DNA of 64,000 bases from Octopus bimaculoides (Eukaryota). The position numbers and the translations under genes are program-made. The notes beneath the pieces were generated by a model. It saw only the letters and a list, made by a program, of their open reading frames with translations, was not told where the DNA came from and did not search any database. Positions 25,267-61,720 of this stretch are shown here, piece by piece (positions within the stretch are counted from its first letter, which is position 1; the number at the start of each line of letters is the position of its first letter). The stretch spans positions 85,783,111 through 85,847,110 of the forward strand of contig NC_068989.1 of NCBI RefSeq assembly GCF_001194135.2. Direction: 5' to 3'.

Positions 25267-27426
25267 TTACTGTACAGTTTCCTCACTATTATTCGTCTCA
25301 ATCTTTACAGTAGTTAATGCTCGGTTATCTGACCGCTGGTTAGTTAATGCTTGATCAACCGATGGCTGGTTAGCTGGTGACTGGTTATCCAACAGCTGGT
25401 CCCCGACAAGTTGGTCATCAACTGGCTGGTTAGTTACTTGCTGGTGAGCTGCTGGCTGATTAGCTAATGACTGGTTCTTTGTGTGAGTCTGTTTGTGGCG
25501 AGATAAATTGCTATTCTGGGTAAAGGACTTACCACAGACGTCGCAGTAATATGGTGCTCTCTCTGTGTGAGTCAGTATGTGCCGAGCTAAGGTGTCATAA
25601 CGTGCAAATGCTTTGCCACAAAGGTCACACACATATGGCTTAACTCCACTGTGAGTAATTTGATGAGTAGTCAAAGCACCACTTCGTGCAAAACTTTTAC
25701 CGCAAATGTCACAATGGTATGGTTTCTCACCAGTATGCATACGTTTATGATAAACTAATGCATTTCTCTGTGCAAATTTCCTACCACAAAAATCACATTC
25801 AAATGCTTTCTCACCTGTGTGGGTCCGCCTATGACACTTCAACATACTGTTTTGGGCAAACGTTTTCCCACATATATCGCAATGGTAAGGCTTCTCCCCT
25901 GTGTGAATACGTTTATGGCAAATTAGAACACGATTTTGAGAAAAAGCTTTGCCACATACATCACAGGAGAATGGTTTTTCAGTAGAATGTGTTAGTTTGT
26001 GGCCCCGAAATGAACTTTTGTCTGAGAATGTTTTACCACAGATTTCACAAGCGTAGGGCCGCTCCCCGGTATGGATGCGTACATGAATAGATAAATGATT
26101 ATTTCGATAGAAACCTTTGCCACAGATCTCACAACGATAAGGCTTTATACCAGTATGGGTCAGTTTGTGTCTAATCAAATTGTAAATGTTTGAGAAAGCA
26201 TTACCACAAAACTCACAGACGTATGGCTTCTCTGAAGAGTGAGTCACTTGGTGGGTAGATAAACCACCCTTTCGGGAGAATGCTTTGCCACAGATGTCAC
26301 AGTGGTACGGTTTCTCTCCTGTGTGTGTACGCACGTGTGTAGATAAATAGCTGTTTCGAAAGAACCCTTTGCCACAAATTTCGCAACGAAATGGTTTCTC
26401 GCCAGTGTGTGTTAATTTGTGGGTTGTTAGGGACCCGTTTTGTGAAAAGGTTTTGCCACAAATGTCACAGTTGTAAGGTTTCTCACCCGTGTGAATTCGA
26501 CTGTGACGAGATAAATATGTATTTTTTGAGAATTTCTTACCACAAATGTCACAGGCATATGGTTTGACTCCAGTATGAATCATCTGGTGGGTGGCTAATG
26601 AACTGCTATGAGAGAATGTTTTGCCACACACGTCACAATTGTAAGGTCGCTCACCAGTGTGTATGCGTTTGTGAGCAGCCAGTTGGCTGCTCCAGGCAAA
26701 TGTCTTGTTACAAATGTCACAAGTGAATTCCTTCTCTTTATCATGATTATGCTTATGGCGGAGATAAGACCGTTTTAGAGAGAAAGACTTATCGCACATT
26801 TCACAGTGAAATGGTTTCTCTTCAGTGTGGCTTGCTTTGTGCAGAGACAGATCAGAATTTAGTGAAAAAGATTCATTGCAAATGTCACAGGTATAAGGTC
26901 TCTCTGCTGCATGGACACGGAGGTGCTTAGTCAAATGAGCACTCTGAGAGAATGCTTTACCACAAAACTCACAGACAAAGGGTCTCTCCCCAGTGTGAAT
27001 CCGTCTGTGAATGGATAAAGCACTACGATGAGAGAAAGTTTTCTCGCAAACTTTACACTGATGAATCTTCACTTTTGTATTTAGACATTTATGTTGAGTG
27101 ATATCACTTTTAAGAGAAAATGTTTTCCCACATAACTCGCAATGGTTGGTACTTTCCTTTGACTGACTCTCTTTGTTGCTCATGGTCAACTGGACTTCTT
27201 TATACTCACCCAAACTTTCATGGTTGGACTCTTCCTCTTCTGAGTGAATTTCTTTTCCAGTAGACAACTGGCTATTGTGAGAAACAGACTGACTTTCTGT
27301 GTCACAGTTGAATGGTTTCACATCTGAATGTGTCTGTCTGGTGTTATTCTCAGAAAATGCCTCATCCTGATGGAATGGTTTCACATCCAACAGACCCTCA
27401 TCTTGACTGTCCCCACTGTACTCCAT
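25267..27426 (-). CDS. Tandem C2H2 zinc-finger protein (cephalopod-expansion type), 719 aa, 19 C2H2 plus 1 C2HC-type finger
   Basis: Repeated CxxC-12-HxxxH units with TGEKP linkers in one ORF. The track start at 27456 is a TTG. The first ATG, at 27426, has strong Kozak context (GCAACGATGG) and an in-frame TGA upstream. Acceptor ttttattgtag places the exon start at 27638. Confidence 0.95.
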   Translation of the reverse strand: MEYSGDSQDEGLLDVKPFHQDEAFSENNTRQTHSDVKPFNCDTESQSVSHNSQLSTGKEIHSEEEESNHESLGEYKEVQLTMSNKESQSKESTNHCELCGKTFSLKSDITQHKCLNTKVKIHQCKVCEKTFSHRSALSIHRRIHTGERPFVCEFCGKAFSQSAHLTKHLRVHAAERPYTCDICNESFSLNSDLSLHKASHTEEKPFHCEMCDKSFSLKRSYLRHKHNHDKEKEFTCDICNKTFAWSSQLAAHKRIHTGERPYNCDVCGKTFSHSSSLATHQMIHTGVKPYACDICGKKFSKNTYLSRHSRIHTGEKPYNCDICGKTFSQNGSLTTHKLTHTGEKPFRCEICGKGFFRNSYLSTHVRTHTGEKPYHCDICGKAFSRKGGLSTHQVTHSSEKPYVCEFCGNAFSNIYNLIRHKLTHTGIKPYRCEICGKGFYRNNHLSIHVRIHTGERPYACEICGKTFSDKSSFRGHKLTHSTEKPFSCDVCGKAFSQNRVLICHKRIHTGEKPYHCDICGKTFAQNSMLKCHRRTHTGEKAFECDFCGRKFAQRNALVYHKRMHTGEKPYHCDICGKSFARSGALTTHQITHSGVKPYVCDLCGKAFARYDTLARHILTHTERAPYYCDVCGKSFTQNSNLSRHKQTHTKNQSLANQPAAHQQVTNQPVDDQLVGDQLLDNQSPANQPSVDQALTNQRSDNRALTTVKIETNNSEETVQ

Positions 27427-28689
27427 CGTTGCAATGTGAAAATGTTCTTGTTGCAATAAAGACAGTCAATATAAGGGCAGGAGTCAGACAATAAATGCCA
27501 TGTACTTAACAGGTAACATAGTGCTGGAGGATGCAGAGGGAGACAAACGGTCTTGCTATAGCAATTTACTTTCTCAAAAGTCAATAATTCTGTACGTCTG
27601 AGACATTCAGACAACAAACCAGTTTCCCTTGGCAATTACTACAATAAAAAAAGAAATAAAATGTGTCACCGCAAATGAAATTTTATAACATTGGTATTTA
27701 CAACAAAAATAACATCATAAAAATCCTCATTAACAACACTACTACCAGTAAACAATGGAGCTTCTAATATGGTTGCTCAACCTGCAACAAATAACAGCCA
27801 AGATTTCCTCAAAACACACCACGCTGTCTTGAATAAGAAACACATGCATTAATATATTACACAAACATGTGATTTATTAATTACATATTAGTACTTGTAA
27901 TATAATCAGCAATTATATTGTACAATCAGTACACAATAATATAGCTGTACAAATTTCGAGAAAAGTGTGTACACCAACACATATCAAGCAGGTCACCTAT
28001 TCAGCATGCTTTTTCATTACAATATGTGAACAGATAGGTTCCTTAGAAGTAGATCTGTTAGCATAATTAATTTATTATATATTATGCATGTAATATTATT
28101 TTGAAGTCTTTTATTCTTTAACTAGTTTCAGTTATTGGACTGTGACCATGCTGGAGCACTGCATTCAAACATTTTAATTGATTATATGGACTCCAGAAAT
28201 TTATCTGGTTTCATTTTATCTTATTCTTGAGGAAGAAAGATAAAGCAAGGCAGGTGTAAAGGGAAGGTACTGAGACGGAACCAAATACCACTATGTTTTT
28301 CTGCAGAATTCTGACATCTGCTCCATTACACGCACATCCAGCAAGACACCATTGTTTTAACGTCTACCAAATTTCACAATCAAGGCTATGTCTGACTACA
28401 ATCTTTGAAGTGCTACAGTGGTATTGAACCTAGAAGGACATGATTGTGAATTTCTTAACCAGGCTACCATATCTGCACCATGTTATATATTCACGTGTGA
28501 TTTGGGAAATTTGATTTCAAGCTCTACTTTAAAGAAACTCACCCCACACAGAGATAATTTGTCCATACGTACGAAATGAGTTGTGTCAACCATTGCCTTG
28601 AGATAAAATTACACAAATGTTTATAGTAGGAATTGGTGGATTGTATGATCAAACAGACCTATGACCAATTATTGACACTCACAAAGAAA

Positions 28690-36414: not shown

Positions 36415-39400
36415 CTGCAAAATCAATGACAGAGATGGTTATCACAAACTAGAATAACAACAAAAATCAATAGTAACAAGAACAAAAATAGCATTAACAT
36501 GTAAAGCACGACAGGCCACGATCATAGCCGTCAGGCACTGGTCAACAGGCCATGATCGTGGCCCAGATAGATGCGTTTAATTGATGGGCATTTGTTGAGG
36601 TCTAATGTCATTCAAACTGCCCGACACCCACCAGAATGCAAGAGGACTAATAGTTCAACTAAGGCGGTGGGTTGGTAGAAACGTTGGCACACCGGGCGAA
36701 ATGCTTAGCAGTATTTCGTCTGACTTCATGTTCTGAGTTCAAATTCCACTGAGGTCGACTTTGTCTTTCATCCTTTCGGGCTGGCTGGCCCCTTCCCCCA
36801 AAATTTTGGGCTTTGTGCCTAGAGTAGAAAAGACTATATCTTTAAAAGGTGGTGAGCTGGCAGAAATGTTAGCATGCTGGGCGAAATGCTTAGCGGTATT
36901 TCATCTGTCTTTACATTCTGAGTTCAAATTCTGCCGATGTCAACTTTGCTTTTCACATTTTTGGGGGTCAATAAATTAAGTACCAGTTGTGTACTGGGGT
37001 CGATCTAATCGACTACTCCCGCCCCCCCAGTATTGATCTGTAAATCAGTAACACACTTGGTAGTATATTATGGCTGTAAAACTAAATACTGTGTCCTTTG
37101 CTAAGAGTTAATTAGAAAGTTCTGCATCAGAGATGTTTGTTAGCTTGTATTATATAAAACTTATAGGCGCAGGAGTGGCTGTTGGTAAGTAGCTTGCTTA
37201 CCAACCACATGGTTCTGGGTTCAGTCCCACTGTGTGGCACCTTGGACAAGTGTCTTCTACTATAGCCTCGGGCCGACTAAAGCCTTGTGAGTGGATTTGG
37301 TAGACGGAAACTGAAATGAAAGACGCCCATCATATATGTACATATATATATGTATATATGTATGTGTCTGTCCCCCCACCATCGCTTGACAACCGATGTT
37401 GGTGCATTTACATCCCCGTAACTTAGCAGCTCGGAAAAGAAACAGATAGAATAAGTACTAGGCTTACAAAGAATAAGTCCTGGGGTCAATTTGTTCAACT
37501 AAAGGTGGTGCTCCAGCATGGCCACAGTCAAATGACTGAAACAAAAGAATAAAAATAGAGAAATACCTTCATTTTTACCTTGCTTTTTCTCTGTCCCCTT
37601 TTCCTGTACAGACACCAAGTTACCATCAGATACAGCAGCTTTATCGTCCAATATGTCGTCATCATTTATTGAGTTGTCATCAAGATCTGATTCTTCAATG
37701 AAAGACTCCTCAAAGCATTGAAGAATGGTTTTTTGTCGGGGATTCTAGAGAGGGAAAACAATAACAATTATTATAGCATTAATAATTTCTAAATGTTGAT
37801 GCAAGGTCACAAATTTAGGTAGGGATGTAAAGGGCAGTGGCATAGCTAGGGTAAACCGTGCCTGGGGCAAGCCGCAAAAATGCCTTCCCCAACCAGTTAC
37901 AAAATCCACGAGATTATATAGTACTCATTTGCTACAAGTAATTAATGTTTTAAAGCAATATTTTAGGAATAATTACTTTGCCAGGGTTCATTTACTTGCC
38001 GGTTTGGTACAACCGGTAATTCAAAATATATTTTTTGAATGTTTACTTTTACAAAACCTCCTTATTTTAACTGTTAAATGCACCAACCCCCCTGATTGAA
38101 ACATTAAAAAAATTAATGTGTGAAATGAGATGTAATAAAAAAAAATACAGGCACAGGAGTGGCTGTGTGGTAAGTAGCTTGCTTACCAACCAGATGGTTC
38201 TGGGTTCAGTACCACTGTGTGGCACCTTGGGCAAGTAAGTATCTTCTAGAAGATGGAAGTCCATACAAACTTTTAATCATATTGCCAACTAAGTTTATAC
38301 TTCTTTAATATAATAAGGAGAGAAATGAAAAATACAGGAAATTGAATTGAAGTGTTAAAAGTGAATACTTACTTGGAATAGAACTGTGTCTGTTTCTGAA
38401 AAGTCATCTTTAGAAAGACCAGCTTTACCCAAAATATTCAGCTTATTTTTTATAAGAGGCCTAATAAAGGGGAGAGGATTATAGAGGTTTAACAGCGAAA
38501 TTATCATCAATATCATATATATATACTTACATATAAAAGGCATGGTTTGCTCCTGGCATAAGATGTTTTTAAAGGAGAGAGAATTTTCCTCTCAGACATA
38601 TTTATATCTACAAGGAGTGGGGGTGCTGAAAAGTTCCTGGCTTTGAGTAAAAGAAAATACAGGAGGATCAGTTAATTATGACTTAATTCAACATATTCCC
38701 CTCTCAGATTCACACACTTATTGCAGTGGTCCTTCAGTTTTTCTAAGCTCCGTAAAAGAACTTGGACAATTGGGCCTCCAATCAGGCCTTTCACAAAACC
38801 CTTAAAGCCAGAAACTTTTCAGTACCCCCCTTGTAAGAACTTACACATTATTTTAATTCTTTTTTTTATACAAAATAAAATGAAGCTCTTTAGTTTCACA
38901 CACACGCGTAAAGATATAAATGCATAAATATTACCATATAAAATCATCAGCAGTTCCTGTGGCCACAAGATAGTGAATGTTTACTGAATCCATTTGTCCA
39001 ATTCTATGAACTCGATCTTCAGCCTGGACTAGAATCTGCCAAGAAGAATATATAAATTAATACACACATACAAGTATAACACACACACACACACACACAC
39101 ATATACTCTTTTACTTGTTTCAGTCATTTGACTGTGGCCATGCTGGAGCACCGCCTTTAGTCAAGCAAATCGACCCCAGGACTTATTCTTTGTAAGCCTA
39201 GTACTTATTCTATTGGTCTCTTTTGCCGAACTGCTAAGTTATGGGGACGTAAACACACCAGCATTGGTTGTCAAGCGATGTTGGGGGGGACAAACACAGA
39301 CACANNNNNNNNNNNNNNNNNNNNNNNNNNNNNNNNNNNNNNNNNNNNNNNNNNNNNNNNNNNNNNNNNNNNNNNNNNNNNNNNNNNNNNNNNNNNNNNN

Positions 39401-42400
39401 NNNNNNNNNNNNNNNNNNNNNNNNNNNNNNNNNNNNNNNNNNNNNTATATATATGCGCACATATATACGACGGGCTTCTTTCAGTTTCCATCTACCAAAT
39501 CCACTCATAAGGCTTTGGTCGGCCCGAGGCTATAGTAGAAGACACTTGCCCAAGGTGCCACGCAGTGGGACTGAACCCGGAACCATGTGGTTGGTAAGCA
39601 AGCTACTTACCACACAGCCACTCCTGCTTGCATGTAATAACATATGTAATGAAGTAACTCACGAGACAAGACCTCTCAACTGAGTGGGAGAGAAATATTG
39701 AGGGAGGTGGATTGATAGCAAGTGATGAGAGGTTAAAGTATGAGAGAGGGACAGGAACCCGTGCCTCACTACAGAGGAGATACATGGCTAACCCAACTGG
39801 GAAAGAAAGAGGATAGCAGTGAAGATGCATCATGGCATACCCTCAAGTTACAGGAAGATGAATATAAGAGAAGTGGTATGGTGGGGTAAGTAGGTTTGCT
39901 GGACTGCAAGAGGTGAATGGCAGATATAGATGAGGATGAAGGGAAATGCAGTGAGAGATAAACATGGATTAGTACAGAAATACCTTCACTGCAAAACCTT
40001 GAAAAATCAATTACATAAAGAGCTGAAAGGAAAGAAAATATAATCAACAAATAATCGTTGTACTTACTCCTGGGTTCCAGAACAGTTCAGCAAAGATAAC
40101 CAAGGATGCTGCAGTTAAATTTAACCCTGCATTTGCAGCACAGATGGACAGTATTGCTAACCGAATATCTTCATGTTTTTGAAACTGGTCGCAATAGAAC
40201 TTGCGCTGTTGACTAGTTGTTTTCCCATCAATGCGAATGTATTCAATTTTGCACTGGAAAGAATTATAATAAAGACAGAGTGTAATGTTAGCAGAGAGAT
40301 TTTGCCAAAGATAAGAGTTCGTAATTTACTTAATTTGCAAGATCCTCTTATGAGGCGATGCTGAAAAGTTCCTGGCTTTGGGTAAAAGAAAATACAAGCA
40401 GATCAGTTAATTATGATTTTATTCAACATATCCACTTCTCAGATTCACATACATATTGCAGCAGTCCTGTAAAAGAACTCAGAAGGTTGGGCCTCCAACC
40501 AGGCTTTTCGTGATATCCTCAAAGCCAGATATTTTCCAGCACCCCCTTGTACACCCTTTAAACACGTATTTCCAGTACGTACACTCCTGACCCCTACTAC
40601 CTCAAGAATCTCAACCCCTACTATCCCCCCAATCCCAATCTCTCATTTATATAATGCTTTACCATTCCACTTTTCAGCATCAGTATCATCATTTAACGCC
40701 TGTTGTCCATGGTGGCATGGGTTGGATGGTTTGTTTGGGCTGGTACACTAGAAGGCTGCGCCAAGATTCAGTCCGATTTCACATGGTTTTCTACAGCTGG
40801 ATGCTCTTCGTAATGTCAACCACTCCGAGAGTGTAATGGGTGTTTTCATGTACCACCAGCATGGATGCCATTTGCATGACACCAGTATCTGCCATGACAG
40901 CAATTTTGCTTGGCTTGATGGGTCTTCTTCTGAAGCACACAACATAATGCTTCCAAGGTCATTGTTTCCACAAGGCCCAACACTCGAAAGGAGCTCAGCT
41001 ACTTTGCCTCCATGAGCTCCAACATTTGAAAGGAACTCAGCCACCTTGTCTCTGTCAGGCCCAACACTTGAAAGGTACTCAGCCACTTGGCTTCCATGAG
41101 GCACAACGATCACAGGTTGATCTTCTTTACATACCACCAGCATCAGTGCATCACTGGCAACAACCATGTTCGAATGGTGCGTTTTACATGTCACCAGCAT
41201 GGGAGCCAGTCAGGCAGCACTGGCATAAACCATGCTCGAATGGTGCCTTTTACGTGCCACCAGCATGGGAGAGTAATCTGAAGGTCCTCTAATCTGAAGG
41301 TTGGAAAAGCAGTAATTCAGTATAAGACCTAAGACCATAAGAACTCACCCAATCCATACCAGCATGGAAAGCAGATATAAGAATGTTTAGGATGGTCACC
41401 ATGGGGAAGATAAGTCACTAAATCGCTGATCATCATTATTGCCATCATTTTAATGTCCACTTTTCCATGCTTTCATGGATCGGATGCAATTTGTTGAGGT
41501 TGATTTTTTATGGCCAGATGCCCTTCCTGTCATCAACCCTCACCTTTATTCCAAACGGGGTAACATTTCCAGACAGGTTTTCATGAAAGACTGCAAACGA
41601 ATGACACCACTAGCATGATGGAGACACCTGTTTTACAAACTCTCGTAGTAAGTCAAAGCAAGGAGACAGTAAAACGCACACACATACACAATGAGCTTCT
41701 TTTAGTTTCCATCTATTAAAACAACTCACAAGGCTTTGGTCAGTCCAGGGCTTTAGAAGACACTTATTAACTGTGCCATTTGGTGGGACTGAAACTGAAA
41801 CCATGTTGTTAGGATGCAAGCTTCTTTACCACACAGCCACGTCTGTGGCTATACTGATTATTTTCATAAATCAAAACAATTTATTGGCCTCTTAGAAGCC
41901 CTGTAATAAGAGCAGAATGGATAGGTGAGTGGTTTAACAGACTAACCTTATTTTGGACATGCTTTTCAATGGCATCCATCATCACACAATGGTGTGCAAA
42001 TACCAGGAACTTTTGACCAGCTTCCACTCGGTCTGTGATGTAGTCGCTGTGGGATGAAACATAGAATTGATGGAGATGCATGTTTAAAACAGTGACGTGC
42101 GGGAAACATGTAGTAGTGTCAGCTGGATGTAGAATGGACATGGGTTTGTGTGTGGGCATCTTGTAAGAAAAATATACATCTTACATACTAACAAATAGAT
42201 TGGTGGTATGAAAAGGGGACAGAGAAGACAAAAGAGAGGGAGGGAGGGAAGGATGAAGGAAGAAAGGAGAAAAGAAGGAAGTAAAGGAGAGAAGCTAGTG
42301 TAAGGGTGTGAAATAGAAAGCGAATTATTATATTTTCTGGCAAATAAGTTCAAATTTTCAGACCAAAATTTACAGCAAAAACGGTAGGTTGATTCTTACA

Positions 42401-45400: not shown

Positions 45401-48400
45401 NNNNNNNNNNNNNNNNNNNNNNNNNNNNNNNNNNNNNNNNNNNNNNNNNNNNNNNNNNNNNNNNNNNNNNNNNNNNNNNNNNNNNNNNNNNNNNNNNNNN
45501 NNNNNNNNNNNNNNNNNNNNNNNNNNNNNNNNNNNNNNNNNNNNNNNNNNNNNNNNNNNNNNNNNNNNNNNNNNNNNNNNNNNNNNNNNNNNNNNNNNNN
45601 NNNNNNNNNNNNNNNNNNNNNNNNNNNNNNNNNNNNNNNNNNNNNNNNNNNNNNNNNNNNNNNNNNNNNNNNNNNNNNNNNNNNNNNNNNNNNNNNNNNN
45701 NNNNNNNNNNNNNNNNNNNNNNNNNNNNNNNNNNNNNNNNNNNNNNNNATGAAAGGCAAAGTCAACCTCAGTGGAATTTGAACTCAGAACGTAACGGCAG
45801 ATGAAATACTGCTAAGCATTTCGTCCGGTGTGCTAACGTTTCTGCCAGCCTGCTGCCTTGCCATCGATAAAACATTGCCTATAAGTATTCATTAAGTCAG
45901 CATGAAAACGTGGACATAAAAATGAAAAAGCAAATTTCATCATCACCATAATCATTTAACGTCCATGATACATGCTGCCATGGGTTGGACAGTTTAACAG
46001 GATCTGAGGGAGTCCAAGGATGGCACCATTCTCCATTGTCTGCTTTGGCATGGTTTCAACAGCTCAATGCACTCCCTAACGCCAGCTTACAGCATGTACT
46101 GAGGGCTTTTTTTTGTGCCAGCTGCACTATTGAGGTCACTATACAGCTTGCAGGACTATGAACCCTGGGAGAGGCAGGTATCAGCTTCATGCTAGGGGAC
46201 AAGGTGTGTAAGTGTGTATGTATGTGTGTTTTGTGAAAGACAACTAAAAGGTTGGCATCAGGAAAGGTATCCAGCCATAAAATGTGTGGTTCATCTATGA
46301 CAATTACTGTGCTAATTATTAATGAAATAATACACTAACCTGGAGTAGTGGAAGTGCTGCTTTTGTTCTGGCACTCTTGAAATTCTTCAGGAAGTGGGAT
46401 TCATCCTTTTGGAGGAAGAAAAAAAAAATAAATAAAATGTAAAATACACAAAGAAAAGATGATACCAAATGTCAGAGAATGTTGATAAAAATACAAAAGG
46501 AACAAATACTAAGAAAGGTGTAGCATGACTGTTCCAGTACCGCTTGACTGGCCTTTGTGCCGGTGGCATGTAAAAGCACCCACTACACTCTCGGAGTGGT
46601 TGGTGTTAGGAAGGGCATCCTGCTGTAGAAACTCTGCCAAATCAGATTGGAGCCTGGTGTAGCCATTTGGTTTCACCAGTCCTCAGTCAAATCGTCCAAC
46701 CCATGCTAGCATGGAAAGCGGACGTTAAACGACGATGATGATATAAGATGGAGATATCAATCATTATCCTCCTCCTCCTCGCTGCCAACACCGTCATCGC
46801 TGCTGCCGCCACCACCGCGTCTAAAACACCACTGTTCAAATTTCCTTTTATCAATTTCCTTTATAATCCAGCATTCAGCTCCATAGGTAGCTATGATTAG
46901 TCCACATTACTCCATAAGGAGCACAGGGCAAGTTTCTTGTTTTCTCTGGTGCATACGTTCCTCCCTGGTTGCGATACCAGTCTGTCACAGTCTGAGCAAT
47001 GTGAAATGAAGTTCATTGCTCAAGAACACAACACATCATCTGATCCAGGAATCGAAACCACAATCTTACGATCACGAGTCACGCACCTCCATAGGTGGCT
47101 CTGCTAACTATCAATGAATTGAGGCGTTGCTTTTTCGTTTGCAAGGAGACGGCCTTCATCATCATCATTTAACGTCCGTTTTCTATGCTGGCATGGGTTG
47201 GACAATTTGAGAGGAGCTGGTCAACTGGAGATCTGCCCAGTTTCCATGTCTGCTTTGGCATAGCTTCTGCAGTTTAATGCCCTTCCTAATGCCAACCGTT
47301 TTACAGCGGTTGCTATTACACAGCACTGGCACAGGTGCTTTTTACATGGCATTGGCACATGATTAGGTATACTCAGCCGGAGAGGGATGCAGGGGACATG
47401 CCTGTATGCAAGGACAACCATGTATTTACTTAGTTTGACATATCTTCTCAAGCACAACAAACTACCAAAAGTCTTGGCCTGTCATCCCCTAGGTGAGGCC
47501 CAACATCTGAAGATCCTTTTTCACCACTTCGTTCCACATCTTTTTGGGTCTACCCCATCTACACATTCCCTCCACAATTAGAGCTCAGCCTTATTCTTCC
47601 ATATATTGTTCAGTGATATCATGGCATTCTTGGCTATACAGACTCTTCTCTTGATTTCATGGGTGTCATTGTACTCACTGGTAATAAGAATACCAGGGTA
47701 CACAAATTCTTTTACATTTTCAATATTACATTGTTTATCAGTGTCTGTGAACATATATTTACATACAACCAATGCCAATATGAAAAACTGACATTAGAAG
47801 ATGATGATGATGACAACAAACATGCATATATGTATACCCTGACACACACATACACATTATTGACATGGAATCCTACTTACCATAATAACAATTTTAAACT
47901 TCTTGGTTAACAATTCATTTGATTTCTTTGACATCAGATCATAACTGAGAATATTAACCATTCCACTTACACCACTATCTTTGCCTTTCAAGATCACATT
48001 TATCTCTTGTGGATCCAAACTGGGTACCCAGCGTCGAATTTGCTGAACAAAAGAGGTAATGATAATAATAATAATAATAATAATAGTAACCATAAGAGCA
48101 TCACAGCAAACTACAGCACATACTCAAGGTACACAGAGCTGTGCTTGGTAGTGCAGTGAAAGCACGTTATAAAAATAAGACTACTGAATAATAATAATAA
48201 TGTGGTAGATAAAAGAAAAATGGAAACCAAGATCATAGATATTGCCACACCCAGGGATGTATGCATAGATGACAAAGAGCTGGAAAAGATGAAGAATTAT
48301 AGACTACTAAAAGATGAAATTGCAAGAATGTGAGCAATGAGGAGAGAAATTGGAATTGATATGAGGGCAGAGCCAACCCCAAAAACATAATAATATATAT

Positions 48401-57563: not shown

Positions 57564-57820
57564 ACTCCATCCGATGTGCTGCAGCATGCCTTTGCTGATT
57601 TTGAGAAAGTCTCATCTCCCTTCTGTCTTGAGACTCAATCAGACGTGTTGCAGCATGCCTTTGCTAATCTCAAGAAAGTCTCATCTCCCTTCTCTCTCGA
57701 GACTATTTGACGTGCTGCAGCATGCCTTTATTGGTCTTGAGAAAGTCTCATCTTTCTATCTTGAGACTCCATCGGACGTGCTGTAGGATGCATTTGCTGG
57801 TCTTGAGAAAGTCTCATGTC
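57564..57820 (+). repeat. Tandem array of about 66-69-bp units, about 3.7 copies
   Basis: Unit gacgtgctgcagcatgcctttgctggtcttgagaaagtctcatctcccttctgtcttgagactccatc, starting near 57572, 57641, 57709 and 57775. Confidence 0.9.
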
Positions 57821-58298
57821 CCTTAATCTCTATTTTGTAAGCAGTTGTATGTAGCATGTCTGTAATTTTGTATGCAGTGTAAATTAACCAAATGTAAGCA
57901 AATTGTAAATACATTACAACCTTGCGATAATTATGAACTGGTAGCTGAACAGTAGATATGTACGGGTATCTCTGCTAGTATTATATATATGTAAGTATGC
58001 ATATATGTATGCATGCCTGTATATATGTGAGATAATAGTTTCAGTATTAAAGTGAAAATATCTGACATTACAATAGAGAGATGTTATTGTTTCACTTTTG
58101 ACACGTAATAATGCAATAGTGGAGGAGATATGATATGGCTCTGGGCTAGCACTAGGCAAGTTAAATATTTTTTTGGCCTAAGACACTACATGGTCCCTAA
58201 GTATGGCATGTGTAAAATTTGAATGAAATTAGTTGTGTAGTTCTCAAGTTTTAGGGACAGAGAGACAGACACACGCGCACACACACACACGCATTCTC

Positions 58299-59483
58299 AT
58301 TGGGTTGGCAACTATGTTCCCGCCGTTTAAAAAAAAATTTTGGAATGTATTTCTTCCGAGAATTCTATTTTTGAATCATTTTGGAATCTATTTTTTTTCT
58401 AGTTAATTTTTGTTTATTTTCAGATCATTAAAATGAAATGTCAAGTTAAGAAAAACGAGCATTTTCGACACCTCCTACTTTTTGCTTTTAATCAAGGTTC
58501 TAAGGCCGCAAAAGCTGCTCGTGACATTTGTACTGTGTGTGAAGAGGGTGCTATAGCTGAAAGAACCTCTTGTGATTGGTATGCCGGGTTCAAAAATGGA
58601 AATTTTGACCTCAAAGACGCATCTCGCTCTGGCCGTCCAATTGAATTCGATGAAGAGCGATTAAAGCAACTTTTGCACGAAAATTTTCGACAAACGACAA
58701 GGGAACTGGCAGAGAAAATGGAATGCTCTCACACTGCTATAGAGAAGCATCTTCACTCGATGGGAAAGGTTCAGAAGTATGGAGCATGGGTTCCGCATGC
58801 TTTAAGTGACAACAAAAATCAACGAGTTACAATCTCCGCTGGTTTCCTTGCTCGTCACCGCTCAACTCATGGACACAAGAAACGATTTCTTTACCGAATC
58901 GTTACTGGCGACGAAAAATGGTGCCTGTACATCAATATGAAGCAGTGTAAGGAATGGCTAAGCCCCGGTAAACAAGTGACACCACACGTGAAACAAGATC
59001 TTCATCCACGTAAAACGATGTTGTGCGTATGGTGGGACTGGGAAGGGATTATCCATTACGAATTGCTTGAACGGAACCAAACGGTCAACGCGGAACTCTA
59101 TATTCAACAGAAAGAACGACTCAACATGGTTATTCAAGAGAAAAGACCTAATCGGCAGCATGGTGTTCTGCTCCACGACAACGCCCGCTCTCATATCGCT
59201 AATATGACCAAGGAAGCCATTCAAACGCATGGCTGGGAAATGCTGCCACGCCCGCCATACTCTCCTGATTTGGCACCAACGGATTTCCTCCTCTTTCGAT
59301 CTCTTTCAAATGCTATGCGCGGAGTTTCGTTCAATTCTGATGCAGAATTGAGAGCTTGGTTGGATCAATTTTTCGAGTCGAAATCGGGTGATTTCTACGA
59401 ACGAGGTATTGAAAATCTTGTTGAACGTTGGGAAGAAGTTTGTAAACAACAAGGGTGAATACATTATTGATTAATTAGTTGAT
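58299..59483 (+). mobile_element. Mariner transposon, mellifera-like, right TIR missing
   Basis: Left TIR-like ATTGGGTTGGCAACTA at about 58299 followed by the transposase ORF; no reverse-complement TIR found downstream. Confidence 0.9.
58433..59458 (+). CDS. Mariner D,D34D transposase, 341 aa, with a terminal +1 frameshift
   Basis: WVPHAL, IVTGDEKW, LLHDNARSH and YSPDLAPTDF motifs; 34 residues between the 2nd and 3rd Asp. Removing one T near 59440 restores the ending VVNNKGEYIID* (stop at 59474). Confidence 0.9.
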   Translation: MKCQVKKNEHFRHLLLFAFNQGSKAAKAARDICTVCEEGAIAERTSCDWYAGFKNGNFDLKDASRSGRPIEFDEERLKQLLHENFRQTTRELAEKMECSHTAIEKHLHSMGKVQKYGAWVPHALSDNKNQRVTISAGFLARHRSTHGHKKRFLYRIVTGDEKWCLYINMKQCKEWLSPGKQVTPHVKQDLHPRKTMLCVWWDWEGIIHYELLERNQTVNAELYIQQKERLNMVIQEKRPNRQHGVLLHDNARSHIANMTKEAIQTHGWEMLPRPPYSPDLAPTDFLLFRSLSNAMRGVSFNSDAELRAWLDQFFESKSGDFYERGIENLVERWEEVCKQQG

Positions 59484-59491
59484 ACTATTCC

Positions 59492-59615
59492 GGTAAATTT
59501 TCAGATTAACACCCGCACGATTTTCACTAGGGTGTTAGGGTTAGGGACGGAATTCTCTAACCTTAACCCTAACACCCTAGTGAAGATCGTGCGGGTGTTA
59601 ATCTGAAAATTTACC
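59492..59615. mobile_element. 124-bp foldback element with telomeric TTAGGG repeats
   Basis: 55-bp arms (59492-59546 and 59561-59615), 53/55 complementary; GGTA...TACC ends; flanks ACTATTCC and ACTATTAC. Confidence 0.8.
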
Positions 59616-59871: not shown

Positions 59872-59907
59872 TATTAAGCACGTGTATTAAACGTTAATTT
59901 AAGGGTT

Positions 59908-60192
59908 GGTACTACTAAAGCAGCGCGGACCCGAACGCGCAGTCGCGCGTCCGCGCTAGCTAGTCTTGAGTGGTCGATCCTAACCCTAACCCTAACCCTA
60001 ACCCTGTCCCTAACCCTAACCCTAACCCTATCCCAAACCCTAACCCCATCCCTAACCCGCGCGTGCAAATGAATACGTGTTTAGGGTTAGGGTTAGGGTT
60101 AGGAATAGGGTTAGGGTTAGGATCGACCACTCACGACTAGCTAGCGCGGACGCGCGACTGCGCGTTCGGGTCCGCGCTGCTTTAGTAGTACC
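59908..60192. mobile_element. 285-bp foldback element with a telomeric core and 6-bp TSD AGGGTT
   Basis: 72-bp arms, 71/72 complementary; (CCCTAA)n at about 59980-60058 and (TTAGGG)n at about 60081-60120; AGGGTT directly repeated at 59902-59907 and 60193-60198. Confidence 0.88.
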
Positions 60193-60929
60193 AGGGTTAA
60201 TATGTAACTGTAAATACTTATAACGTTACACCTGCAGCGATAATTATTAACTGGTAATTGAAAGATAAATGTGTATTTTTAAATACCTTGGATTTGGTTT
60301 CATCACATTAGAATTAAAGTGAAACAGCAGTCACTTTTGACACGTAATACCGAACCAGGCTAAAAGATTGTTCCGGGTCCGCGTTAGGCAAGAAGTTGAA
60401 ATTTTTTTTTGACCCATGACACTTCATGGACCCTAAGTAATGCATATGTAAAATTTGAATGAAATTCCAGAAAAAGTTTTTGAAATATGTTACAGAGGTT
60501 TAAAGTTTGATAATTTTTACCCAATCAGAAAACCGGGTTTGTGCGCGATAGCTGTGTATTATAAAACGAAAGTAAATATCGGAAGACGAAGTTTGAAAGA
60601 AAACGAAAGTAATTGCATGGCATAAGAAGAGAGAGGGAGGAGGAGGCAGCGTGTGTGAGAGGTAATACATGTACAGACAAAGAGAGGGTGAATGACAAAG
60701 AGTGAGGTAAATATATAAAGGCGAAGCCGTTAAAAAGAAAATAAGAGAGATTGAAGGTGACAGATAGAGAGTGGGAGAGTTGTCGATCTAAAAGTCGAGT
60801 TCTCGTAGAAAATTATATATTTTTTTTATTATTTAAAGACAAACTTCTCTTTGGGAGACAGATTTCGAAAATCAAATTCATTTTTCTCGAGGACACACCG
60901 TTTCAGAGGTACACTTTATGGAGTTTATT

Positions 60930-61720
60930 CCGACGCGTTTTCTTCATATTAAACAGGGCCATCTCCCTGAAGGGATTTGTGATTTGTTTGTTTTCTTACT
61001 TACTAAGATTTTGGTCTTTACTAAATTAATTCTAAGGCCTTTTAATTCTAGACTTTGCTTCCACACCTGAATTTCCTTCTCTAGTTCTTCTAGTGATTCA
61101 GCTATAAGAACAAGGTCATCAGCATAGAGGAGTTCCAAGGGCAGTCTAAATTCTTCTGTTATGGCCTGGAGGAATGAACAAGAGGGGACTGAGAACCAAT
61201 CCTTGGTAAAATTCCTACATGTATGCTGAATTTATTTCTATTCTCGTTGCCGACTTTCACCTTACTGACAGCATCTAAGTACATGGCTTGTACAACTCTC
61301 ATCAACCACTCATCTATCCCTAGCTTCCGCATTGCCCACCAGATAAGGGAGAGGGGGACCCTGTCAAAGGCTTTCTCCATGTCAACAAACGCCAAGTCCA
61401 GAGGTGTATGTTTGGCTAAGTACTTCTCCTGCAGCTGCCTTGCTAGGAATATAGCATCAATAGTGCTTCTCTCTGGCACAGAACCAGTTCATTATCCAAT
61501 TAGTTGAGCTTTGACCTCTCTGTAACTGTCATCATCTGGTCCAGCAATTTGATACCTCTGTAATTATTTCTGTCTAAGGCATCACCTTTAACTTTGACTA
61601 TAATGCTGCTACACTAGTCATTGGGTATGAGTCCCTTGTGGACAATCTGGTTAATTACACATGTGACTAGACCATATCCCATCCCGCTAGATATTTTAAG
61701 CATCTCAGCGGTGATTCCTT
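60930..61720 (-). mobile_element. RTE-clade LINE reverse transcriptase relic
   Basis: RSTIDAIFLARQLQEKY...AFVDMEKAFDRVP and LLYADDLVLIAES...GLRINLVKTKIL. Confidence 0.88.

Follow-up and report, generated by a model that had tools for sequence, protein, structure and literature searches.

Foldback transposons and palindromic MITEs (transposable elements of the miniature inverted-repeat type), such as FB and the Galileo-like elements, are small and non-coding, consist almost entirely of inverted arms, and carry tandem subrepeats within the arms, a short loop and a target site duplication (TSD). The duplications are 9 bp long in Drosophila FB and the MULE-like foldbacks and 7 bp long in Galileo. 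Mobile elements with telomere repeats in their own sequence are also known, namely TBE1 and Tec of ciliates, in which the repeats lie at the extreme ends, and the Terminons/Athena elements of rotifers. Terminons are giant retroelements in which a 3' stretch of reverse-complement telomere repeats anneals to chromosome ends (PMC6431247). Here, we analysed a 285-bp foldback element in a 64,000-nt stretch of Octopus bimaculoides DNA (contig NC_068989.1, positions 85,783,111 to 85,847,110 of the forward strand; hereafter the window). It shares the foldback design and, like the ciliate and rotifer elements, contains telomere-type repeats. TTAGGG is established as the telomeric hexamer of molluscs and further invertebrates of the sea (Plohl et al. 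2002, as cited in PMC6204057). The element is probably a DNA transposon of the foldback/MITE kind, non-autonomous and moved by cut and paste, that duplicated 6 bp of its target.

Structure and probable insertion of the foldback element

The inverted repeat of the element terminates exactly at the start of a perfect 6-bp direct repeat, and the probability that such a repeat abuts both ends by chance was about 2.3e-4. Since the flanking repeat is direct and not inverted, a simple local fold-back duplication is excluded; an inverted repeat that ends at a direct flanking repeat thus indicates insertion with a staggered cut of the target. The flanks joined without the element read TTAAGGGTTAAT. The element is placed near the start of the second of two direct copies of an unnamed dispersed repeat (57838-58230 and 59875-60466), which are approximately 70-87% identical and lie on either side of a mariner element. 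Across the insertion point, the joined flanks could be aligned with the older paralogous copy at 57838-58230, which is without the element. This alignment was matched by 2 of 500 shuffles, and that of the right flank alone by 1 of 500. As far as such a sequence comparison goes, the paralogous site is suggestive of an insertion.

The element has no coding capacity. Its open reading frames (ORFs) are at most 64 aa long and are all translations of the repeats, and no relatives of them were found in two very large protein collections. Like MITEs in general, the element is shorter than about 600 bp and non-coding, and its terminal inverted repeats (TIRs) are bounded by a short TSD. An earlier note on this DNA, made from the letters alone, had called it a non-autonomous DNA transposon; the TIRs ending at a perfect 6-bp direct repeat and the missing coding capacity support this. 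The same note had described the coordinates, the length of 285 bp, the termini GGTAC...GTACC, the two arrays, the 22-bp spacer and the AGGGTT duplication, and each of these was found as placed (Table 1).

Table 1 Features of the foldback element and its target site duplication (positions in the window)
Feature	Position	Strand	Description
Foldback element	59908-60192		285 bp; read directly from the sequence
Left TSD copy, AGGGTT	59902-59907		Read directly; identical to 60193-60198
Left 72-bp TIR	59908-59979	+	Starts GGTACTACTAAAGC; 62.5% GC; 11 CpG
C-strand telomere-type array, (CCTAAC) x 13.3	59979-60058	+	Tandem Repeats Finder, period 6, 83% matches
22-bp unique spacer (hairpin loop), GCGCGTGCAAATGAATACGTGT	60059-60080		Read directly
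G-strand telomere-type array, (TTAGGG) x 6.8	60081-60121	+	Tandem Repeats Finder, period 6, 88% matches
Right 72-bp TIR	60121-60192	-	12 CpG; C at 60134 is the sole difference from the left arm
Right TSD copy, AGGGTT	60193-60198		Read directly

The arms are complementary at 71 of 72 positions, in agreement with the single difference noted earlier, and the mismatch is T at 59966 against C at 60134. Because of this C the right arm has a 12th CpG, against 11 in the left arm. The observed/expected ratio of CpG was 1.57 in the left arm and 1.64 in the right arm, against 0.50 in the whole window at 36.7% GC, and outside the element no 72-nt stretch of the window contains more than 9 CpGs. The divergence of 1/72 between the arms and the undecayed CpGs fit a young element, as had also been proposed.

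The inverted repeat extends into the arrays, covering 113 nt at 96% identity. When the region was folded as single-stranded DNA, a free energy of -147.5 kcal/mol was obtained (z = -26.5). Each arm contains a nested hairpin, which in the left arm is formed by GCGCGGAC...GTCCGCGC (-19.3 kcal/mol, z = -2.9) and in the right arm has -20.3 kcal/mol (z = -3.3). The spacer showed no structure of its own on folding and no further copy within the window. Variant units of the C-strand array are CCTGTC, CCTATC, CCAAAC and CCCATC, most of them on the spacer side, and the G-strand array has the single variant unit GGAATA. For a 42-nt pattern of the arm, 0 matches were expected in shuffles. Telomere dimers were observed 15 times in the window compared with an expectation of 0.19, and 14 of the 15 lie within the 285-bp element or a second foldback at 59492-59615. 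Permuted forms of the telomere hexamer occupy 0.16% of the window positions.

No second copy was detected in the window, either by an exact search allowing 3 mismatches or by blastn-short with a word size of 7. The terminal 21-mer and an inner-arm 23-mer had no exact match in viral, metagenome and prokaryote collections, which do not include the host genome. The arm was also translated in two frames, with the aim of detecting copies miscalled as small proteins in public assemblies; searches of 5.8 billion proteins and 1.84 billion representatives returned unrelated telomere-repeat translations or nothing. Full-text searches on telomere repeats within transposons, which did not cover Repbase/Dfam, found no description of a telomere-repeat foldback MITE.

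The surroundings of the element are rich in decayed transposons and other repeats, which favours the transposon reading. The microsatellites (AT)26 and (AG)15 were located just upstream of it by Tandem Repeats Finder. Just downstream lies a decayed retroelement, of which two minus-strand ORF fragments at 60944-61479 have matches to reverse transcriptase (RVT_1, E = 3e-7 and 7e-5). The first copy of the dispersed repeat is adjoined upstream by a tandem repeat at 57564-57834, with 3.9 copies of a 69-bp unit at approximately 80% identity.

Other readings of the locus

Several observations weigh against a transposon with a 6-bp duplication. The combination of GG...CC ends with a duplication of 6 bp matches no described superfamily. 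The 33-bp left flank alone did not align significantly with the paralogous site (55 of 500 shuffles). Only a single copy was seen, although the absence of matches in collections without the host genome is weak evidence. No transposase partner was found, the sole transposase in the window being that of the mariner, which makes TA duplications. Furthermore, a second reading of the junction gives TG...CA ends and the 4-bp duplication GGGT.

This last reading would keep the element type, with the ends TGGTAC...GTACCA, and would assign it to a retroviral-integrase-like transposase of the Ginger type or a relative of IS3/IS481. Indeed, the bases just outside the arms (T at 59907 and A at 60193) are complementary, the inverted repeat can be extended by one position, and GGGT abuts both ends. 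By published definitions, integrase-related transposons typically end in TG...CA, duplicate 4-6 bp and have TIRs of 40-270 bp. However, the longest exact flanking repeat is 6 bp, and the neighbouring foldback at 59492-59615 ends in GGTA...TACC and yet has no T/A outside its arms. Ginger1 and Ginger2 have TGTNR ends compared with TGGTA here, and they duplicate CCGG or CCGT (Ginger1) or a site within the preferred RTATAY (Ginger2), so that neither accommodates the element even when the duplication is taken to be GGGT. We regard the 4-bp reading as unlikely. A one-off repair event is, in our judgement, distinctly unlikely: either a palindromic or extrachromosomal telomere fragment would have been captured at a staggered double-strand break, or telomerase would have acted at a broken palindrome. 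The insertion of interstitial telomere repeats by double-strand-break repair is known (PMC7215372), many metagenome loci carry head-to-head telomere blocks between direct duplications of 10-40 nt (see below), and just one copy of the element was seen. Nevertheless, if telomerase had healed a central break by extending its 3' ends, the order would be arm-(TTAGGG)n-(CCCTAA)n-arm; the arrays of the element have the opposite orientation, and this route was rejected. The 72-bp CpG-rich arms are non-telomeric and have no source in the window, and an inverted repeat that ends sharply at a short duplication is a signature of transposition. A captured fragment would also need an origin of its own, most simply an excised transposon.

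The locus might instead be a host hairpin-RNA locus, that is, a small-RNA precursor, or a remnant of the terminal hairpin of a linear viral or plasmid DNA. The extremely stable fold with a nested hairpin in each arm would suit such a locus, and models of miRNA precursors matched below threshold, with at most 44 bits. These Rfam matches are far below the gathering scores and were aligned mainly by stem pairing, as would be the case for any long perfect hairpin; no Rfam family reached its gathering score anywhere in the window. No viral contig matched, and both the hairpin-RNA and the viral reading leave the target duplication unexplained. In addition, a transposon origin and later production of small RNA are not mutually exclusive. 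We consider this reading very improbable. The chance that the foldback is a chimeric artefact of the assembly or the library appears smaller still. Nine runs of N (between 6392 and 56767, 10 to 570 bases each) mark the window as part of a gapped draft scaffold, and palindromes are hard to assemble, but the element lies within 7 kb of gap-free sequence. An asymmetric 22-bp spacer, unequal arrays, one substitution between the arms and a direct 6-bp duplication are not expected from a chimera, and no PacBio or Nanopore adapter was recognised on reading the centre of the element.

Telomere arrays in the neighbourhood and in metagenome contigs

The second foldback at 59492-59615, which is 400 bp upstream of the 285-bp element and unrelated to it, is the sole other tight, high-identity foldback in the window. 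It is 124 bp long with 55-nt arms at 96% identity and ends in GGTA...TACC. Its core is also telomere-like, in the orientation opposite to that of the 285-bp element (TAGGGTGTTAGGGTTAGGG / 14 nt / inverse). Its duplication was read as 8 bp with one mismatch (ACTATTCC/ACTATTAC) or as the 6 bp ACTATT with two extra bases. This foldback sits in the 3' untranslated region of the mariner and is absent from the same spot in three related mariners (on contigs L123, L001 and L124); it is therefore a true insertion.

The mariner itself is decayed and extends from 58300 to approximately 59690, with its 5' TIR TTGGGTTGGCAACTATGTTCCC at 58300 and a degenerate 3' TIR. A 1-bp frameshift, located 7 codons ahead of where the ORF usually ends, truncates its ORF (58433-59458, 341 aa). 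The best protein relatives are 76% identical and no identical protein was found on record. The closest DNA relative is a copy with 91% identity on a TARA Oceans metagenome scaffold (L123), which, as judged from the sequences, suggests a related host or horizontal transfer. The contigs with the closest mariners (L001, L002, L123 and L124) have the mariner alone in common and contained no related foldback.

A structural scan of metagenome contigs by telomere pattern yielded the loci L003-L122. Approximately 110 of these 120 loci are on contigs of marine eukaryotes with 60-70% GC and represent a phenomenon unrelated to the 285-bp element. In them, 10-40 nt of host sequence are directly duplicated on either side of head-to-head (TTAGGG)n(CCCTAA)m blocks, which measure 40-150 bp and in some cases follow one another in tandem; examples are L007 (2123-2257), L006 (1053-1212) and L017 (247-432). 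A flanking duplication of at least 10 nt was found for 73 of 183 such blocks. They look like the result of break repair or of introner-like insertion, and no description of head-to-head telomere blocks with flanking duplications was found in the literature. As a separate observation, L062 (1226-1297) and L072 (3726-3797) are one locus in two orientations, with opposed telomere-repeat trimers approximately 250 bp upstream of an ORF starting MAVGKNKRISKGKKGGKKK. By eye, the ORF resembles a ribosomal protein, perhaps eS1/RPS3A, and this would point to a promoter element of the telomere-box kind.

A few low-GC loci of the scan, L040, L044 and L093, resemble the design of the 285-bp element, with no sequence similarity to its arms; that such a design occurs elsewhere counts in favour of the transposon reading. 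In L040, two elements (291-469 and 533-757) have the TIR GGGTCTAGTCCAG, 9-bp duplications and internal telomere arrays. One of the two copies lies in a telomere-like target with the duplication CCCTAACCC, and this target is probably the array of an older element. L044 (1176-1295) has 52-nt arms around inverted telomere arrays, a 9-bp flanking repeat and an end related to that of L040; by eye, it may be placed in the L040 family. L093 (1069-1423) is a 355-bp palindrome in an AT-rich contig, with GC- and CpG-rich arms of 176 nt at 93% identity and a core of (CCCTAA)n / AT-rich loop / (TTAGGG)n; a target duplication could not be recognised. In both L044 and L093 the arms enclose (CCCTAA)n/loop/(TTAGGG)n, oriented as in the 285-bp element. 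Since L040 and L044 make 9-bp duplications, they belong to a superfamily other than that of the 285-bp element.

For the 285-bp element as a transposon, the following course of events may be envisaged. A transposase made elsewhere would recognise the 72-bp TIRs, excise the element, cut the target with a stagger of 6 bp and join the 3' ends of the element to it, and gap repair would then duplicate AGGGTT. The palindrome would most likely have arisen from the inverted duplication of one end that already carried a subterminal telomere-type array, and the lengths of the arrays (13 versus 7 units) may since have drifted by slippage. No special mechanism has to be invoked for the symmetric (CCCTAA)n/(TTAGGG)n core, since the inverted duplication of one array-bearing end, as in many foldback MITEs, would yield it. 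Either the insertion would be recent, or hairpin-templated repair may keep the arms alike. What the sequence shows is the inverted repeats, the abutting direct repeat, the missing coding capacity, the retained CpGs and the likeness of the arms; a transposase, its superfamily and a role for the arrays are inferred.

The homing of P elements offers a model for tethering, and by analogy one possible role of the arrays would be the tethering of the element through telomere-repeat-binding proteins. That the arrays serve as subterminal binding sites is a conjecture, and so is a preference for telomere-like target hexamers, for which there is one copy with one duplication. The broader idea that such arrays are a working part of some DNA transposons, with bound proteins tethering the transposition complex so that the elements home to telomere-type sequence, seems doubtful to us. 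If homing were true, the 285-bp element and the second foldback would be animal examples of a recurrent, convergent telomere-array MITE, with L040/L044 as another; this generalisation is likewise held with considerable doubt. Telomere-like duplications were found in 2 of the 5 that could be read in such elements (AGGGTT here and CCCTAACCC in L040), compared with the 0.16% of window positions taken up by such hexamers; this is a hint and no more, given that the loci are few and were selected by telomere pattern and that nesting in array-rich DNA gives the same result. The single copy supports just the ordinary reading, that of a young MITE whose cargo is unusual.

Telomere repeats at interstitial positions are fragile and are bound by telomere proteins. 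Transposons that scatter inverted pairs of telomere repeats could therefore seed fragile palindromes, G-quadruplex sites and ectopic binding of telomere proteins. DNA transposons whose integration is directed by sequence are rare, and a preference for telomere-like targets, if true, would be such a case.

Elsewhere in the window, a MITE-like pair of 55-nt inverted repeats with 89% identity, 414 bp apart, was found at 46687-47210 (TCAAATCGTCCAACCCATGCTAGCATGG...). An inverted pair of repeat copies spans 2.4 kb at 37183-39626; its arms measure 134, 110 and 67 nt, with identities of 87-96%, and the pair is interrupted by an N-gap. On the minus strand, 25267-27456 contains an open frame of 729 aa in one exon with 17 C2H2 zinc fingers, which matches all animal groups alike.

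Comparison with described transposable elements

Superfamilies were compared by means of published definitions of their ends and duplication lengths. The earlier note could not assign the element to a named superfamily from its termini, and the same outcome was obtained here, since the ends and the duplication length fit none of the definitions compared. A duplication of 6 bp is relatively rare (PMC6839031). It is the duplication of Polinton/Maverick (PMC10045372, PMC6839031), and long TIRs are a further likeness to Polintons, but these end in AG...TC against GG...CC in the element. IS3EU/GingerRoot likewise duplicates 6 bp and has TA...TA ends, occasionally TG...CA (PMC10045372, PMC6839031). 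The element ends in GG...CC, and reading it with TG...CA ends would cut the duplication to 4 bp.

Dada elements have no TIRs, insert in multicopy small-RNA genes and make duplications of 6-7 bp (PMC3706591). The element has long TIRs, and no RNA gene was found at gathering score anywhere in the window. A likeness to Dada lies in short internal repeats identical to the target, which are proposed to guide target choice (PMC3706591). However, Dada targets U6, U1 and tRNA genes with a specificity shown on many copies, whereas for the 285-bp element there is one copy, and the match to the target is just the 7-nt telomere-like AGGGTTA.

Other superfamilies were also rejected. The definition of piggyBac is a TTAA duplication with CCC...GGG (CCYT) inverted ends. 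TTAA is present on both sides of the element, but the right side reads ...CCAGGG/TTAA and the left side TTAA/GGGTTGG, which are not inverse. Tc1/mariner needs a TA duplication; the flanks here are ...GGGTT and AGGGT..., and the TIRs of the adjacent mariner are unrelated. The hAT elements have 8-bp duplications and YARNG ends. The last 8 bases of the left flank of the element are TAAGGGTT, the first 8 of the right flank are AGGGTTAA, and the ends are GGTAC.

Taken together, the element is best classed with the foldback MITEs, as one whose cargo is unusual and whose combination of ends and duplication length matches no described superfamily among those compared. In the rule used by Repbase, a non-autonomous element is placed in a classified family when the duplication length is the same and the terminal positions 1-11 can be aligned with at most one mismatch (PMC4455052). 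If the family is multi-copy, it would represent a DNA transposon whose combination of GG...CC ends with a 6-bp duplication lies outside the described superfamilies, and an autonomous partner could define a new lineage.

Among molluscs, pearl of oysters and DTC84 of Donax have inverted repeats of 10-20 bp, an ACGG tetranucleotide microsatellite, satellite monomers and a putative AA duplication, and they are thought to be related to Helitron/Helentron (PMC3879986). They resemble the element in being non-autonomous, with inverted repeats in the flanking modules and an internal microsatellite-like array (PMC3879986). The element was not placed with them: its arms are 72 bp long, its arrays consist of hexamers and run in both orientations, and its duplication is 6 bp and not AA. 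Drosophila Foldback and the MULE-like foldbacks were rejected because of their 9-bp duplication. In contrast to FB and Galileo, the subrepeat of the element is the telomere hexamer and the duplication is 6 bp; and unlike in Terminons, TBE1 and Tec, its telomere arrays are internal, behind 72-bp arms, at an interstitial site.

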